From Oopsacas minuta (lineage: Eukaryota > Animalia > Porifera): 64,000 bases of DNA. Positions within the stretch are counted from its first letter, which is position 1. Every line of letters starts with the position of its first letter. The notes beneath the pieces are model-generated. The model saw nothing but the letters and a program-made list of their open reading frames with translations. It searched no databases and was not told the DNA's origin. The translations under genes and the position numbers were made by a program. The DNA lies in the NCBI GenBank assembly GCA_024704765.1, contig JAKMXF010000277.1, forward strand, positions 124,001 through 188,000, read 5' to 3'. Shown one piece after another: positions 926 to 39,349 of this stretch.

Positions 926-3900
926 ATGGCAATTACAAGCCATGCGAAAGCGTTATTTACCTCTCTCAAGGAAGTATATGGTCCTCAAGTTGCTGTCCTA
1001 GCAACCAATGAGGTCAGAGGAATGTTTTGGAAGAACGGCCTGACGATTAAAGAATTCTTCGAGCCATTCTCTAATCTCAATATTGAATGGACATTACGTG
1101 ATCCTAGTGGATTAGGTGGTGGATCAGGAAGTTCACAAAATATACATTCACCACAAGCGAATGCTGGTTTGCTCGGCACTTATAAAATCCGGACACTGCA
1201 CGTAAATATTTCCGAGGTTACAGGCCCAGATAATCCGCCGATAAGTTCGGAATTGTTTGATCAGATTTTGCAAGAAGAATTGGACGACATTGCTAAAAGG
1301 TAGGTTAAAAACAGGCCAATTGCAATTATGGGTGTAATTTAAACTTTCATTCAAGTACACCCATGATATAATCACAGAACTCCAAATAGTTTGCAATCAC
1401 AGGGTATTTTGCCAGAATTTTCAAAAATTTCTTCTAATTGAAATTCGCAAATAATCAATCTAATTCCTAAAATCCTGATGATTGTGAATAAGTTGATTGA
1501 TGCCATATGACCATAAATTTCACATTGTAATTTTCGATGTCCTTTGACCTGATTAACCAATTTTTTCATAGAGAGTTGCAAAATAAATGTTATACGTTGA
1601 TAAAAATTTGGTGACAATATACTGGAATTCATTATATTTTGCACTATAATCAACATTCATGACATAATTTATAACAAGCTGATAGATATGTAAGCCCGAA
1701 TCGAACATCTGATTTACACAAACAATTAAATTTAATTGAGATTCCTTTTCCAGAAAAATTATTCATTTCTATTTGACCATTATTGCTAACATTAGAATCG
1801 AAACATGCAACTTTATTACTTAAGTGTAATATGTTAAATACTGCCAGGCGATTTTAGTGACTGCACTAATGTTGTATAATGACCAAGCATGGCCTGGGCC
1901 AAGTATTGAAATTACTGCTTAGTATGTAAAAAGATTTGTAAAGCTCTGCATACAGTTTTGAAAAGTAAATGGAGGCGGCACAGGCAATCTTGAGATCCTG
2001 TGGAACTGTAGTTCGTGTACCAAGGGCTCCATGAACCCGGTTGAGAACCGCTAACCTAAAACAATTTTCATATAGACTTGTGCCAGTAGATGAAAGCGTA
2101 GCCAACAGCCCAACAGAGTTACCAGGCCCCGTAGCAACCTCCTCCAATGCATACCCATGGTATAATTCATATAGGAAATGTTGGTTGCAAAATATTCCTG
2201 TAATGGAACACGAATACCTGAGGTACTATGTATCAGTACTATTAATGGTTTCAAGCAATCAATCAGATCCAATTGCAATATTCGAACAGCTAAACTTAAA
2301 GCTAGCTAGTATGATACAGAAACAGCAAGAGACCAAACCAGAGGATAGGTTCTCACAGCCAAAGTTCCTGACAGAGCATTTACTAAAAACTTATGTTCTA
2401 CTGCATGACATGAGTAATAGTAATTTAGCTCAAGCTGAGTCAATATACTCTGTAAGTTATATTATGATATTCTGGAATAATGTAGGATTTTATAGATATT
2501 AGCATTGATTTTGCAGGACGTCACAGCTATCATGCCCAAGGGTCAACTCGAGCTGTACTACCAGCTTGCTGACCGATTTTTCATATTATTTCAATTTTTA
2601 TTTGAATCAAGAGTTAATTATTCCTTTATACTGATTCTCCATAGACAATGCAATCTAAATACTCACCAAAATACTGTCATTTCCTCAAAATCAACTCTGC
2701 AACAACTTCAATACCTCCTACACCCAGTGACTCAACTCAGAATATAGATAAGTGGCACAATAACTTGCGTTATAACCGCGATTTAGCGAGGAGAATGAGA
2801 CAATATAATACCAAGAGCGATTCAACAGAAAAACATCAGGCAATTTTTAGTATACCAAAATAGACATACATATATTGACTCTCTTTAATAAGAACACCGT
2901 CAAAAGGTTTATATTTAAGGACCAAAATCTAAAATTCCTATATATGTGCCGACAGCGAATAGAATAATTGAATTTATTTAATTTGGAGGCACTTAATGCA
3001 TATATTCAACGTATATGCCGTGTTTTTATAATGAAAGTCAATATTTTAAACCATAAAACAAAATTTCAAATAATTACAGAATCTCCATCAATATAGGCGA
3101 CTAAAATAGCGCCTTCAGGTGCTGCAGAAGATGGCACAGAACATAAAGAATCCAATGCACATACACCACCAAACCATATCATCCATAAAGTAGGTCAATA
3201 CATGTCAGCTGAAGATATGGAATTGGTCACACAGTTTTTACATGATTACATCAACTGGTCGTTATTATCACATCTTGAAACATTGATGCGTGTTTTGTAT
3301 GAGAAAGTCAATAGTCATAATAAATTCTCACGGTTATTCTCATCTTTTAAGAAGTATACTTCAAACAAGAGTGCTACTCCATCTCATGTTGGTTTGGATC
3401 AGTTCAGTGAGGTTTGTGTGTGAAATTCTTTGTAAAATGCTGAATATAACCTACTTTTCCTGTTAGATCTACACGACGGATTCAGTTGAGCTACATATGA
3501 GAATGTTAGGAGATATCTCATTTATGCTCCAAAACTGGGATTTAGCATATAACATGTACCACGGTGTTAAAAAGGATTTTCAGAGTGACCAAGCTTGGTG
3601 GTTATACGCTGGCGCAGTTGAAATGACAGCTTTAAGCGTTTTTATGCTGCCGACTATCAAAAAAGATGCTGTGACGTATTTTGATGAATGTTTCCAGCAA
3701 TATTTCACGATTTGTAAGTCAATTAAGTATGCATTGAGAGCGTTGATGTTGTGGGGCGAAGTGATGAAGGCAAAGGCATTGTATTTGGATGCTTCGGTTG
3801 TGTATACTAGACTAGGAGCAAAAGTTGATGATCTTTGTAGTTCAATGTTACTGGAGCAGGCTGCATTATGTGTGATGAGCAGGTGAGATATTTCGCGGTT

Positions 3901-31620: not shown

Positions 31621-33738
31621 ATGGCAATGTTTATAAGAACGGTAAGTATAATCGACGGGACGCTATCCGACTCTGATAGGAATTAACCTGTCGCGATCAG
31701 TGTCGCAAAGGGAAATTGAAATAATCCCAATCTTTTGAAACACAAAAATCTAAGCTTTGGTTTGAAAGACAAATAAGCATCTTGAAATATAATATACACT
31801 TGCTTTCCAACTTTCCTAATTTTGGCGGGATTCGCCGTCTTTCAGGACGTGTACTGAGGCTAATGTCCCGCCGAAACTTGCTGAAAACATTAATTACCCC
31901 GCGTTTTTTGTAACTTCCGTCCCGCTTTTTACTTCACTAAAGTGACAAGTAGACTCGGATTAACAATTAGAGTCAACGTTAGTCGGGTCAAAATGGCCTA
32001 GTCCCGATGTGACCCTATTTAGCCGAGTCCATTGTAAATCGATACTCATAAACTTCCTTCATATATCGTGCATATTCAGACGTCCTTAGAGAGGAGAGGA
32101 ATTAGAATACCTCAATACAGAGGCTGTGTATACAGCCTAGCAATGGATATCGGAGAAAGCTACAATATATATAGTCATTTCATTAATTCAATACAAACAC
32201 ATTTTCCAGAACACTTCAACGATATTCTTAAAATAATATCAATTCAAGTACCACCAAGTTCTTATGAAAGGAGAATCTTAACTTTGAATGTTCTCAATGA
32301 GTTAGAATTTCTTGGAGTTTACTCGATACTAGAAGCAAATTTCACTGGCTTGGATAAGATATTGCGTAACGCAGCTGGGAAAGAATGCAAAGATATAGCG
32401 GACACTTTTATGGATGATCTAGGAGAATTCTCAGATTGGGATTCTCCATTGAACTCGGGTACTTCGTCTGATGGTCAGATAAAGAAAATTGAATGTTACT
32501 ACTTACGAAATGAAAATAATGGAAGTCGGCGAATACATTCCGATGAAAAAATACTCGATTATAACGATTCGTGTGACTATAGGGATATCCTCAAAAATTG
32601 TGGTCTAGACGTCACTGAAAAAAACTCGCGACTTTTCTACCAGTTATGGGAAGATATAGACAATGAAAATGCTAAAACAACAAAAATATTCAAGTATCTC
32701 ATATTTATAATGATTGGCTACATTCCAACTGAAAGAGAATATATATTTATGATGAACGACACAAGACAAGGAAATACGAAACTCCTCACATTCGCCATAC
32801 TTGCCCATCTAGTTGATAAGCTGAATAAATGGTATTATGGTAAGAATATCATTGTAATTAACCTCACACAGCCTCTACCGAATAATTATCCTAAATACGA
32901 AGAAACGGTAATATCAAATGATGAAGTTTTTCCAGAAGGATTCGGGTATATACATATACATGCTGATAATAGTAAAGCAATGATAGAGGGTTTATTAAGC
33001 AAAGAGTTCACTGAAAAATGGGTGAAAAGCGACGATTATTTACGCACAATAAAACAAAATATACAAAACCTTCCAAATATTCAACTTATAACGTATCATA
33101 ACCCGTTCACCTCATCTTTGAAAATGGAAATGGATTCAGCAATATTCGTAGCTAATGTTCTGCGGCCGAAAAACATATTAATGTGCAAAATCAGAATTAA
33201 TGAAAAACAGACTGAAGTGGTCAGAAGGTTTTATAAACAAGATCTAGTGGAAGGGAATGATAAGCGAATTTTATCAAATATTACATATGAGAACGACCAT
33301 ATAAAATGTGTACCATTAGAAGAGCAAATAAAGGAAATCTGTCATAATAAAAACTACGAACTATTCGTGTTCGTTATAGCGTCAAAAGACCCGGTTGCAG
33401 GAACTTTTTACGATGAAATGGTGGACATTTGTTGTGAAAATATACCACAGCCAGCGAGAAACCAGCCAAAGATATTTCTTATCGATGCCGAAATGAAACA
33501 AGGACAAAAACATTCTCAACCAAAAGTACAACCGGAAACTTACCGAATGTGTTCATGTATCAAACATGAGCACTGGGAAGATTCAATAATATCCCATTTC
33601 CGAAAATTATTAGATGAAGACAAACATGGAAAATACGAATTGAAAAGACATTTGAAGACTGCACAGGGCATTGGGCTCAAGGATAAAATATACTTTGATG
33701 ACCAGTTGAATACTTGCATATATCTAGACTCTGTTTAG
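31621..33738 (+). CDS. Putative DED-like death-fold plus catalytically inactive caspase-like protein (c-FLIP-like architecture), ~559 aa
   Basis: Long uninterrupted exon 32080-33738. Probable micro-exon 31621-31641 (MAMFIRT, donor GTAAGT, phase 0 matching acceptor attcag at 32079). C-terminus aligns by eye to the caspase fold: YELFVFVIASKD (cf. CFVCVILSHG) and PARNQPKIFLIDAEMK (cf. SLAGKPKLFFIQACRG). N-terminal helical segment YRGCVYSLAMDIG...VLNELEFLGVYS...GLDKILRNAAG resembles a DED. Confidence 0.6.
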
Positions 33739-34116: not shown

Positions 34117-34363
34117 CCATAGAGTAAAGAGGGCCTCAAAAATCTCTCAGCTCGTACTTAAATATTCGAGGGGACTGCAACAAGAACAAAATATGCATTA
34201 TCTACAAACCACATATTTGAAAAAAACAGTAACAATTTATAAGAAAAAATAATTCGATTGGATAAATATACAATGCAGTAAATCGCATAATTAAAATAAT
34301 AACCCCAAAGTCACAAAATGTGGAGATATAAATATCTGTTTCTAAATTGGAGAAAATTCAAAT

Positions 34364-35294
34364 TTAATAAATATCAGGACATTTATGAAAATTCTGCTCC
34401 AAATATTTGTAATTAAATAGCCACTCCTCTTTCTTGGTAGCAGGATTTGGCACCAAATCAAACCACAACGGCGTCCATGTCTCACCCCTTGCTTCACGTA
34501 GCCTTCTGGCAGCTCGTTGCTTCTCTTCCAAACGATGTTTCTCTGCAGAAGCTCGCTCTAAATCTCCGTTTTCAAGGAATGAAATGTCAGGACGGAATCT
34601 TGCATCAGTTGGTGGTAAATTCATATTTTCACGTAATTCATTCAAAGCAATGGAAAACTGTGGCATATTGAAGTATTGTTCAGAATTTGGCAATCTATAA
34701 ATTGAAAATATGCGTAATATAAATGAACCTCAATAAACCAGGAAATTGGTAGAATGGAAAACGGGGTCCCTGTCACCACATTTGTGGAGGTGACACTGTA
34801 CCATGAATCGAGAGATGTAATTGACCCTTTTATAAAGTTCGTATAGAACAACTTACTTTGGAATTGCTTTACACAATAATTTAGAATCAGGGCCTTTACT
34901 CAGATTTGAATGAGCTTTGATCCTTTTATAGGTTTCAGGGGTACAGCTCCAAACCTCATTGTTCCAATTGCCATAAAGATTCCTTAATTCTTTACCGTTT
35001 TTATCAACGAGTACACCTTCTACTGCATGCAACTCACGGTTGTTGAACCAATTTTTCTTTTTGAAGTTCAAATTTAGCTTATGACCAGTAGTATGGTTTA
35101 CAAAGTGCATAACTCCGTGTCTTTCCAACCAAATATTTCCTAGATTGAATATAGCTTGAAGTAGCCTATAAGGGTCCACCCAAATCATGACAAATCTCAT
35201 CTTTGTAGGTTCGGCGAGACATAACACTCAACGAATGTCAAACGTCCCGCCAAAAACGGGGAAAATTCTAGATACGTAATTGAAAATTCACACA

Positions 35295-35345
<51 letters not shown>

Positions 35346-36157
35346 CATATTAGTACTAATTCGTTACAGGGACGCCATTACATCACATTTCGCTAGTTTA
35401 TCCTCTTCAATCTTTACATAACGATTGAACACACAAACTTACCCATAATAATATTTCTTGCAGAACAAGGCGGTACATTACTAAGAGTAATCAAAGTCTC
35501 AACTTCACCGTTTTCATCTAAGAATTCATAATTGAATGTACCGTCTATAAGGATATCAATGCTGGTGCCCCAGAACTTAATGCTCTGTCCGATAAAACCG
35601 CGTACTCGAATTTTGGGCAACTGAAAATGGATCGCAGAAATCGGCGGATGATGGCTAACTTGCTCCGTAACAAAATAGAAGTCTTTATTATTATTCATGA
35701 TTTCATATGTTTCACCTAAAAGAGGGTTAAATGGCTTGTAGATACGGTGAGCAAGCGAAGATTGTGAGACAGCGAACACTCCTGCGATGTATTCAAGTCG
35801 CTCAATGGGATCTGTCGTATTCATCAAGTTATACATATCACCTCCATGAGAAAAACATTCGAAATATTTTTGCAAAGTACTCAAAGGTTCATTTAGGATA
35901 ATTGGCAAGGAAATGTGTGTCAAATCATTGCCAACGAATTCCTTCAACATCGACCAAATACTGAATCTCTGAACTGGGCTACGCCCAGGGAGCTCTTGAC
36001 GCGGATCTGAAAATGGTAAAATGGAGAAATCTTTCGAACGAATTTCATCTTCAGGAGCAAAACTTCCTGCAAAAATTTTCGTTGAATTTGGAGCAAGGTT
36101 TTCACAACTCGCATCATGGAATATTTCTTGTTCGGTGTTTTCCATAGTTACACTCAT
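34364..36157 (-). CDS. Short oxysterol-binding protein-related protein (FFAT + ORD; OSBPL1/OSBPL2-like), paralog A, 3 exons, ~442 aa
   Basis: Exons 36157-35443, 35139-34857, 34694-34364 (1329 nt). FFAT-like EQEIFHDASCE; ORD motifs WSMLKEFVGNDLTHISLPIILNEPLSTLQ, YKPFNPLLGETYE, EQVSHHPP, TDARFRPDISFLENGD, KHRLEEKQR, CPDIY C-terminus. Confidence 0.9.
34720..34798. mobile_element. MITE family C (copy 2), in OSBP paralog A intron 2
   Basis: AAATGAACCTC ... TTTGTGGAGGTGACACTG|TA. Confidence 0.7.
35289..35342. repeat. (CA)n microsatellite with one interruption, in OSBP paralog A intron 1
   Basis: About 54 bp of CA repeats visible directly in the sequence. Confidence 0.97.
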
Positions 36158-36441
36158 CAGTTATGGGCGAAAATGGAAAATGCTGTAATAATATGAAAAA
36201 ACAAAGAGAAAATTGTAGAAAATACAAAAAGTAACTTTATATATATATATACGAGTTATATACGATTTCATGGGGTAAATTATAAATAGAATTTTGCCAA
36301 AATGCCACGTATAGAAAGTATATAGAGACACAATAAAGTGTAAGAAATATCAAATTAGAAAACAAAACATAATGGAAAGTAATCAAATACTTAGAAGTAC
36401 AAAAATAATATGAAATTACTTCATAAAGATTAATATAATCG

Positions 36442-36747
36442 AATTTAATAAATATCAGGACAGTTTTCAAAATTCTGCTCCAAATATTTGTAATTAAATA
36501 GCCACTCCTCTTTCTTGGTAGCAGGATTTAGTGCCAAATCAAACCACAACGGCGTCCATGTCTCACCCCTTGCTTCAGTAGCCTTCTAGCAGCTCGTTGC
36601 TTCTCTTCCAAACGATGTTTCTCCGCAGAAGCTCGCTCTAAATCTCCGTTTTCAAGGAATGAGATGTTATGACGGAATCTTGCTTCAGTTAGTGGTAAAT
36701 TCATACCGCCACGTAGTTCATTCAATGCAATGGAAAACTTTGGCATA
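36442..36747 (-). pseudogene. Orphan, frameshifted duplicate of the terminal exon of OSBP paralog A
   Basis: Aligns to 34361-34667 with about 20 substitutions (manual count, ~93% identity) and a 1-bp deletion near 36577 (cttcagta vs cttcacgta). Lacks the first 27 nt of the exon and its splice acceptor. Confidence 0.88.
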
Positions 36748-37020
36748 GTCCCAAACGTCAATTCATATACGATAGATTCCGGCTATTATAAAGTCCTATT
36801 TTGCGAGAAATCATTGCAAATATGCGAAATTTGATATGAGCTCTATTTCTGTGAAAAAATTGTTACAATGCGAATATTGGTATCGAATGAATTATAAACC
36901 ATTTATCGTAAAAGTTATAGAAACCAGTAGATTTAGAAAGTAGTTAATAGGCATGAAACACAAAAGAAAATACGTTGAATAAAAGTGAGAAAGTTGCACG
37001 AAAAAGTACACAATTTGGAA

Positions 37021-39349
37021 TCAAAAAATATCAGGACATCTGTCAAAGTTTTGTTCAAAATATTTATAGTTGAATGTCCACTCATCACTGTTATTATAGG
37101 GATTATACTTCATTTCAAACCAAAGAGGTGTCCATTTTTCCCCTTTAGCTTCACGGAGTTTCCTTGCCGCTCGTTGCTTCTCTTCCAGACGATGTTTCTC
37201 CGCAGAAGCGCCGTCCAAATCACCATTTTCAAGACATCGGATATCAGGTCTATATCTTACATCAGTTCGTGGTAAATACATACCTTCACGGAAATCGTTT
37301 AATGCAAGTGAATTCAGTGGCAAATTGAAACAGTATTCTGAATTTGGTGGTCTATATACAATAAGATTTAGAGGAAATGTCATACAGTTAACTTCCTTAG
37401 TATCAAAGCTCAAGGGACCACGATAATAATAGTTAGATATTAGGTTTGGGACCATATTTGTGTAATTATATATCTCGATATATCCGTGTTAGATATCACA
37501 GGAGTTGATTGTATCTAGGTGTATTTTAAGAATATATATCCGAAAATATTCACGTAAATTATTACAGGGGTGGTGAGCCAGTTTCACCCATGGGATCATT
37601 TTGACCCACTGTCACAACCTGTACTAGTTTTTCTGCAACAGTCAACTCCCGTAATATCAAACACGGATATATAGAAATTGTACAAATATGGCCTCAAACC
37701 GTCAAAGTAACATATTTCATCTGTCAAATCGAAGTAATTATCGCAGTCCCTTGAGCTTCAAAAATTTCAAACAAACTCAATTACCTTGGATTAGCTTTCA
37801 CCAATAATTTAGAATCATGTCCTTTCCTCAGTCTTGGGTTTGCGAGAATTCTTTTATAAGTTTCAGGGGAACAGCTCCATATCTCACTCGTCCAATGTCC
37901 ATACAGATATCTTAATTCTTTGCCATTTTTATCAACAACAACTCCTTCTACTGCATGTAAATCTCTATTATTGAACCAAGATTTTTTCTTGTATGTCATA
38001 TACAGTTTATGACCAGTCGTGTGGTTTATTATAGGAATAGTGCCGTGTTTCTCAATCCATAGATCACCTTAGGTAATAGAATACACGGTTGCAATCGAAG
38101 AGTTAAATATTTGTTACAAAAATATATCTGAAAATTACAATCTATGCCAGCAGCATAAACTGCATTGAGTTTCATCTACAGATTGCTGTCCATGTGTTAC
38201 TCGTAAGGAATTGAAACTACCAATTCCCACAAAATAGAAATAGAATCAGCACAACTTCAACATCCTATAATGCATCGAATTAATAGTGCTGCCATTACAA
38301 ACAGACTGCTATCGACACAGATTGTAATCTTAGATTTTTGCTCGCTACACTCGAGGTAAATTTTCAAATGAACATAATTGTTGTCACTTACCGAATATAA
38401 TATTACGCCCTGTAGTAGTAGGGAAAGGATAAGTAATCACAGACTCAATCTTCTCGTTTGAATCAAAAAATTCAAAAGTCCATCCTCCCTCAACTACAGC
38501 ATCAGCACTGTTACCCCAGAATTTAATGCTCACTTGGATGACGCCATATCCTCTAAAGTTTGGCAACTGGAATAGCATTGCCATTATAGGTGGATGATGA
38601 CTAACTTGTTCTGCAACAAATACAAAGCCTTTTTCATCGTTTCGCAGTTCATACGTCTCACCGAGAAGAGGGTTAAAAGGCTTATATAAACGGTAACATT
38701 GTGAGGAATTAGTAATTGCGTAATGCGCAGCTACATACTCTAAACGAGTGACAGGGTCTATATTGGGTTGAATCATTTGTTTGAAAGGTTCAGGATATGA
38801 GAATGCTTCAGCAGGCCTTTGCAAAGCACTAAGTGGTTCATTGAGACAAGCAGGCAAAGTAATTTTAGTCAAATCCTTTCCAACAAACTCTTTTATATAT
38901 GACCAAACAGAGAATCGATAGGGAGGCAGAGGTTTGGGTAGCTCAGTGCGACTCTGAGGAACTAATTCGTAAGGTTCATCTACGATAAATGTGTCGTTTA
39001 TTATACGTTTAGGGGTATGCTCTGTGGGAAAGGTTGTGAGATCAATAAAATCATCTCCACTACAATTTTTAACTTGTATAACATTCGTTTCTGGATTTAT
39101 TCTGGCTATTTCTGAAAAATTATTTCTTTCAGTTTTCTGGCTTTCTATATCATCATTCGCGTCTAGGAATATTTCCTCATCAGCATTGGAAGCTTGGTCT
39201 TCAACACTGAAATTCTTCGTTATTGGCTCGCACATGCTAATTAAACTTACACAAGAATTATAAGTAAAAAGGAACGACATTTCTAACGTTGCGTGACTCT
39301 GGTTAAGGTGGCCTGATTTTGGTGAAGGTAGCGTGACGTAACTGTCCAT
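37021..39349 (-). CDS. Short oxysterol-binding protein-related protein (FFAT + ORD), paralog B, 3 exons, ~523 aa
   Basis: Exons 39349-38392, 38067-37785, 37351-37021 (1572 nt); exons 2 and 3 are the same lengths (283, 331 nt) as in paralog A. FFAT-like DEEIFLDANDD; motifs YKPFNPLLGETYE, EQVSHHPP, TDVRYRPDIRCLENGD, CPDIF. Confidence 0.9.
37385..37760. mobile_element. Cluster of three MITEs filling OSBP paralog B intron 2 (family A 37385-37511, hAT-like ~37565-37625, truncated family A 37639-37760)
   Basis: TA|CAGTTAACTTCC ... GGAGTTGATTG|TA; CAGGGGTGGTGAGCC start; CAGTCAACTCCCGTAATATC start with the shared internal motif. Confidence 0.7.

Follow-up and report, generated by a model that had tools for sequence, protein, structure and literature searches.

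Introduction

The order of a death effector domain (DED) followed by a caspase fold is found in caspase-8 and caspase-10 (MEROPS C14A, with a DED prodomain) and in the long form of c-FLIP (CFLAR), a vertebrate duplicate of caspase-8/10 in which two DEDs precede a single pseudo-caspase domain without the catalytic His and Cys. In a 2020 review, c-FLIP is called the only human pseudo-caspase (PMC7586951). Caspase folds have also been described in tandem. Coral caspase-X (Acropora) carries two caspase folds per chain, the first of them inactive, and has been modelled as an intramolecular β6–β6 pseudo-heterodimer like that of caspase-8/c-FLIP; its second domain keeps the catalytic dyad and kills cells, and the inactive first domain damps this killing (PMC4715348). 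In mammalian caspase-16, the prodomain is a duplicated caspase domain without a catalytic site, the result of a mammalian exon duplication, and the C-terminal domain is intact (PMC12198278). Here, we report a computational analysis of LOD99_3594, a gene of the glass sponge Oopsacas minuta at positions 31621–33738 of a 64,000-nucleotide stretch of contig JAKMXF010000277.1 (positions 124,001 to 188,000 of the forward strand; assembly GCA_024704765.1), which we call the window. Its 559-residue product appears to combine one DED-type domain with two tandem caspase folds, neither of which retains the catalytic dyad.

The sponge protein differs from each of the described systems. Like c-FLIP, it places a DED-type recruitment module ahead of a caspase fold lacking the catalytic His and Cys, but the counts are the other way round: a single DED-like domain with a pair of pseudo-caspase domains, instead of two DEDs with one. 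An initial annotation made from the DNA letters had assigned it the c-FLIP architecture; at the level of folds the pairing of a DED with a pseudo-caspase stands, whereas the number of each does not. With caspase-X it shares the tandem caspase folds, yet here neither is active, and they come after a DED-like domain. As in caspase-16, the first of the tandem caspase domains is dead; caspase-16, however, has no death fold and its C-terminal domain is catalytically intact. The domain order of caspase-8/-10 is likewise present and the two end domains match parts of caspase-8, but the dyad, the S1 pocket loop and a PF00656 match are missing and an extra caspase fold is placed in between. A limited literature search found no description of an all-dead tandem caspase protein; the tandem proteins that it returned keep an active second domain. 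The way in which the conserved sponge protein combines known parts, a DED-type domain and two dead caspase domains, is new. Pseudo-caspases are rare, and the death-signalling machinery of the glass-sponge lineage is almost unstudied.

Results

Orthologues and fold prediction

Searches were carried out with exon 2 of the gene or, for the full-length protein, with the database record P0001, as exon 1 (7 codons) is too short. The window protein gave no match in Pfam (E ≤ 10) or with phmmer against the PDB, and neither BLASTP nor phmmer found a significant pair between it and 20 caspase open frames of O. minuta. Because the protein escapes Pfam and single-sequence searches alike, it has been labelled ‘hypothetical’. 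When phmmer was run exhaustively over 1.84 billion representative proteins, it returned five full-length relatives (E 1e-38 to 6e-61, 29–34% identity) and nothing else credible; P0007 (E 9.9e-4, nine short stretches) was left out as a low-complexity chance match. Together with their near-identical cluster mates, the relatives make up six effective sequences with 23–46% mutual identity and 40 invariant columns, and a frame of roughly 500–560 codons is intact in six species.

With the single sequence, AlphaFold gave an unusable model (predicted local distance difference test, pLDDT, 33). AlphaFold2 (AF2) supplied with the six-species alignment reached a mean pLDDT of 69; block means are 60–88 for the larger part of the three domains, and the linkers between them are disordered. 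The model consists of six helices followed by two α/β domains, each in caspase element order. For AlphaFold, a few very divergent orthologues can suffice to reveal how a ‘dark’ protein folds. When Foldseek was run against the PDB, the top matches were almost all caspases (E about 1e-4, probability 1.00), and the nearest clusters in the ESM Atlas were caspases too, at a weak 0.79; a Foldseek search of viral structures, aimed at the DEDs of vFLIP, gave only caspase and metacaspase matches. At the sequence level, the six-protein profile matched 51 chains among all PDB sequences, every one of them of caspase-3 type. The initial annotation had looked to structure prediction for a death fold and a caspase fold, and both appear in the predicted model.

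The C-terminal pseudo-caspase domain

All features of the gene lie on the plus strand of the window. The second pseudo-caspase domain (residues 361–559; 33139..33735) was delimited with VIA, Foldseek and hhalign. In structural alignment, residues 363–558 match procaspase-3 (4jqy_A) with Z 14.4 and a root-mean-square deviation (r.m.s.d.) of 3.0 Å over 168 residues, and the same segment aligns with the whole protease domain of procaspase-3, caspase-7, caspase-8, caspase-6 and c-FLIP, with Z scores of 13–14.4 for the caspases. The individual values are 13.9 for caspase-8 in 3h11_B, 12.6 for the protease-like domain of c-FLIP (3h13) and 7.3 for separase. Sequence comparison points the same way: in hhalign against 14 caspase domains from the O. 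minuta genome, with 60 column shuffles as the null, the domain scored 35.5 versus 12.7 ± 2.1 (P 1.1e-4), which is far beyond chance. The C-domain profile gave 0 matches against the PDB sequences. A C-terminal caspase fold without its dyad, read by eye in the initial annotation, is thus borne out by hhalign, by the procaspase-3 alignment and by the dyad columns, and the three peptide strings that had been quoted are all present in the protein.

The middle pseudo-caspase domain

The initial annotation left an ‘uncharacterised ~250-aa middle region’, which is in fact another dead caspase-fold domain (residues 140–352; 32476..33114), identified by profile, hhalign and VIA wide, an independent structure search over 48,161 representative chains. 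One DED-type domain and two pseudo-caspase domains thus make up the architecture. The best PDB match of the family profile, 6pdq_A (ancestral caspase-3/6/7; E 7.7e-4), falls on β1–β3 of this domain and recurred when the middle domain was used alone; it is the only database-significant sequence link to caspases. In hhalign against the O. minuta caspases the domain scored 32.7 versus a null of 12.9 ± 2.7 (P 4e-4), and in the orthologue P0005 it gives a sub-threshold Peptidase_C14 match (E 0.046). Its structural matches are non-caspase members of the caspase fold: SAVED-CHAT (Z 11.7), the caspase domain of MALT1 (Z 10.2, 191 residues aligned), and legumain, metacaspase-4, the GPI transamidase PIGK and Raptor (Z 8.8–9.7, with Raptor at 8.8). 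An internal duplication was considered as the origin of the pair and set aside, as hhalign between the middle and C domains gave P 0.12; no duplication is detectable, and neither domain is detectably nearer to the other than it is to caspases.

Loss of the catalytic dyad in both domains

In the C domain, hhalign and the alignment columns place Lys443 (33385..33387) at the catalytic His and Glu478 (33490..33492) at the catalytic Cys, the same two codons for which the His-to-Lys and Cys-to-Glu replacements had originally been proposed. Orthologues have K, E or S at the former position and E, V, T or P at the latter, and a conserved, strongly caspase-like strand, PK-I-x-x-I-D-A, precedes Glu478. 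In the middle domain, the same two sources of evidence align Tyr221 (32719..32721), within a conserved Gly-Tyr, with the catalytic His, and Thr270 (32866..32868), in the motif N/Q-L/M/I-T where caspases have Q-A-C, with the catalytic Cys. Both residues are invariant in six species, as are His299, His301 and Asn233, at 23–46% overall identity. No orthologue has His or Cys at the dyad positions of either domain.

Caspases have a long loop after β5 that carries the S1 substrate-binding Arg. In the middle domain, β5 runs nearly straight into the next helix (strand 295–302, helix 305–312), the spacing in the C domain is similarly short (strand 494–499, helix 503–508), and the hhalign alignments of both domains need a gap at this loop. 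Since the dyad is replaced and the loop after β5 is cut to a few residues in both domains, neither can be a conventional caspase. In the predicted model, the element order of the caspase-hemoglobinase fold (β1-α1-β2-α2-β3-α3-β4, linker, β5-α4-α5-β6) fits both domains. The Pfam PF00656 gathering threshold (21.4 bits) is not reached by any orthologue, the best having 13.8 bits (E 0.046), and the locus is absent from a genome-wide PF00656 scan; neither as an enzyme nor by Pfam does LOD99_3594 belong to Peptidase_C14.

The N-terminal death-fold domain

Residues 17–127 (32107..32439) are predicted by the AF2 model and the structure search to form a six-helix death fold, with DEDs as the best matches, in keeping with the DED-like helical pattern noticed initially. 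The helices span residues 17–31, 35–48, 50–57, 68–84, 96–103 and 108–122, with block pLDDT of 60–85. In the VIA wide search, the domain matched the caspase-8 DED (4zbw_A; Z 11.2, r.m.s.d. 2.1 Å over 87 residues), the PEA-15 DED (4iz7_B; Z 10.9, 90/90 residues), MC159 (Z 10.3) and the FADD DED (Z 9.0), with PYD, DD and CARD proteins at 7–9.3; helical bundles may give such Z values by chance, yet all listed matches are death-fold proteins. In the orthologue P0006, the domain gives a Pfam DED (PF01335) match with E 0.0054, at 17.4 bits below the threshold of 35.9 bits. Pfam runs on every domain of every orthologue otherwise returned scattered sub-threshold noise, and none of the matches was to SAM, which had been considered as an alternative prodomain; the structure search gave a death fold instead.

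phmmer with the N domain of P0006 produced chance matches only, the ESM Atlas gave no usable match for residues 16–126, and in hhalign against the sponge caspases the domain behaved like the shuffle null. A hidden Markov model (HMM) of the domain found nothing among the prodomains of O. minuta caspases. For the most part, sequence does not reveal the recruitment domains of glass-sponge caspases.

Gene structure, locus and evolution

LOD99_3594 is a real gene. The coding part of exon 1 (31621..31641), read from the sequence, comprises 7 codons from the ATG start and ends at a GTAAGT donor; the 438-nt GT..AG intron (31642..32079), bounded by GTAAGT and CAG, is followed by exon 2 (32080..33738; 1659 nt), which encodes residues 8–559 and the stop codon, matches P0001 at 100% and sits inside a 556-codon open frame on the plus strand (32068 to 33738). 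The long exon thus agrees with the one first described. The joined exons give exactly P0001, the 559-residue NCBI hypothetical protein LOD99_3594 of Oopsacas minuta, so that the junction 31641^32080 put forward in the initial annotation is consistent with the record. An analogous junction was seen in the RNA of one orthologue: the Logan RNA-derived contigs L028 and L029, from two runs, each map as two blocks onto the genomic locus L023 with a 1.38-kb GT..AG intron between them, splicing a short first exon, which contains hardly more than the ATG, to a large exon, the structure proposed for O. minuta. A second species has an mRNA-sized, RNA-like contig, a putative transcript of its orthologue.

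On one side the gene is flanked by the end of an EGR gene with nested WD40 genes (EGR/WDTC1) and on the other by tandem OSBP-type genes on the opposite strand. Four relatives on long genomic contigs of other assemblies each lie between the same EGR/WD40 and OSBP genes and are therefore positional orthologues. Between species the gene has 26–32% identity, compared with 51–78% for exons of the flanking genes. At 23–46% amino-acid identity the orthologues are saturated, and the near-identical pairs (~99–100% identity) hold few differences. With the protein and the three domain profiles as queries, only the gene's own locus was returned from the 61-Mb O. minuta assembly; this loose first-look filter supports a single copy and says nothing on remote kin. 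A homologue search by word index returned LOD99_3594 alone, whether the query was the protein or the family alignment that itself contains the five orthologues; for proteins found only in ENA or Logan, such a blank is better taken as a limit of the index than as absence. The gene is old, single-copy and fast-evolving, and so far it is found only in glass-sponge-type assemblies.

The nearly intronless body had been taken as a sign of retroposition or rapid gene turnover. Given a single copy, neighbours kept in four other assemblies, an upstream ATG exon shown in the RNA of one orthologue, and an O. minuta genome in which caspase domains are usually encoded by a single exon, neither retroposition nor rapid turnover is supported.

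Downstream in the window, at 34364–39349 on the minus strand, are the tandem OSBP-related genes. Among these, the open reading frame (ORF) 36528–36761 repeats the exon 34364–34693 but shifts frame towards the end, and its tail corresponds to the out-of-frame ORF 34342–34497; this suggests a frameshifted partial duplicate or pseudo-exon.

Candidate partners and the caspase repertoire

Two loci elsewhere in the genome are candidate partners. The FADD-like gene L026 (G000:C3:119434-122661; ORF 1489–2109, plus strand) encodes 206 residues with an N-terminal DED, at only 23 bits in Pfam but with the KRHDL motif kept, and a death-domain-like C-terminal half; its orthologues in other assemblies are P0020 and P0021. 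A partnership with LOD99_3594 is plausible. The other, on contig C45 (L027 and L008; G000:C45:27045-33809), has the look of a DED-caspase gene of the caspase-8 type: a caspase domain is preceded on its own strand, ~3 kb upstream, by a sub-threshold DED match (E 0.05). The DED match holds one in-frame TAA, probably an intron, and more DED-like helices are present in ORF L027:777-1283.

The O. minuta genome as a whole contains at least 47 six-frame matches to Peptidase_C14, many of them single-exon. Dense tandem caspase arrays are found on contig C288 (about 369–377 kb and 461–476 kb), and further caspase contigs are C22, C133 and C266 (loci L002–L021). Two adjacent genes on C22 (L011, L019) have an N-terminal caspase domain fused to NHL/β-propeller repeats, and two caspase domains (L006, L004) lie inside open frames of 1694–1937 codons. 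Among the caspase genes L003, L005, L007 and L017, several have prodomains of 180–300 residues without a Pfam match at E < 0.01.

Discussion

Based on the predicted model and on analogy with the described systems, LOD99_3594 is probably a cytosolic 559-residue protein, with one DED-type domain and two tandem dead caspase folds, that would modulate the activation of initiator caspases without catalysis. In such a mechanism, the two dead domains would pack together as the two subunits of a caspase dimer do; the caspase-8/c-FLIP heterodimer shows such packing, the coral caspase-X model proposes it, and mammalian caspase-16 is another precedent for a pseudo-dimer. The DED-type domain would then dock this pre-formed dead dimer onto DED assemblies of the sponge FADD-like adaptor and the DED-carrying caspase, where the protein would act as a non-catalytic modulator by capping, decoying or scaffolding the assembly. 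From the same analogy we infer that its role may be that of a decoy or regulator.

Several observations weigh against this proposal. The predicted template modelling score (pTM) of the AF2 model is 0.44, which is too low to establish the packing of the two caspase-like domains, and the family alignment behind it comprises only six effective sequences. The His and Cys equivalences are profile alignments rather than residue-level structural superpositions. The DED-type assignment is the weakest of the three domain calls, drawing on the predicted structure and one sub-threshold Pfam match: searched against the PDB at E ≤ 10, the N-domain profile gave chance matches such as Lem3 but no DED, and in hhalign neither the DED nor the DD of the FADD-like glass-sponge protein reached significance (P 0.18 and 0.24, respectively). 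The RxDL charge triad of helix 6, in a register set by eye, has an invariant Glu109 at the place of the Asp, and its Arg is not conserved. Finally, the invariant Tyr221, Thr270, His299 and His301 suggest, from the alignment, that the middle domain keeps a conserved pocket for a separate role, perhaps binding or catalytic; a pure decoy could do without it.

Part of this evidence can be read in another way, namely that the folds are as described but serve outside cell-death control, with the dead caspase domains as a general binding scaffold, in the manner of Raptor with its caspase-like domain or separase with its pseudo-protease domain, and the DED-like domain driving self-assembly only. The resemblance of the middle domain to many non-caspase clan-CD members, Raptor included (Z 8.8), its invariant pocket residues and the very small sequence kinship of the protein to real caspases or DEDs would all fit. 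We nevertheless think this unlikely, because a DED-type fold joined to caspase folds is otherwise known only in death signalling (caspase-8/10, c-FLIP) and because the C domain fits true caspases (Z 13–14) better than other members of the clan (separase, 7.3). The same pocket could, alternatively, belong to a re-tooled enzyme, in which Thr270 with Tyr221 and/or His299/His301 would form a new active site of an atypical hydrolase or transferase. The invariance of these residues and of Asn233, whereas the dyad positions of the C domain drift freely, speaks for such an enzyme; however, the substrate-binding loop after β5 is nearly deleted, a binding pocket or structural core explains the invariance equally well, and a Thr nucleophile is not known to us from any clan-CD enzyme. 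An enzymatic middle domain is therefore improbable.

That LOD99_3594 is not a functional gene at all, being a decaying caspase pseudogene or an annotation artefact with a chance open frame, might be argued from the missing Pfam match, the NCBI label ‘hypothetical protein’ and a divergence that is fast relative to its neighbours. Against this stand a frame intact in six species with 40 invariant columns, spliced transcripts assembled in independent RNA runs and well folded predicted domains, and we give this explanation hardly any credence. Non-catalytic modulation of initiator-caspase activation is accordingly the reading that we retain as probable.

How far the parallel with c-FLIP extends is a separate matter. 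No sequence match to CFLAR was obtained in the PDB, PDB-profile or 1.84-billion-protein searches, and the last of these likewise gave no match linking the caspase-X family to LOD99_3594. As c-FLIP is a vertebrate duplicate of caspase-8/10 and no sequence kinship to CFLAR is detectable, the sponge gene is an independent invention, as the initial annotation had supposed when it placed the DNA in an early-branching animal, which the glass sponge Oopsacas minuta is. LOD99_3594 is not a c-FLIP orthologue; judged by analogy, it works like c-FLIP at most. We tentatively entertain, as a possibility somewhat short of an even chance, that glass sponges independently invented a c-FLIP-like brake, a fused and fully dead caspase ‘dimer’ on a single DED, which would cap or re-route FADD/DED-caspase assemblies. 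In a bolder version, the invariant Tyr/Thr/His pocket of the middle domain might sense a ligand or a modification.

The protein is a natural case in which to ask whether DED platforms can be regulated by a dead caspase that comes pre-dimerised, and it adds a data point on how early animals controlled their initiator caspases. If the c-FLIP-like brake is real, pseudo-caspase control of extrinsic death signalling would have arisen at least twice in animals, already in one of the earliest-branching lineages.

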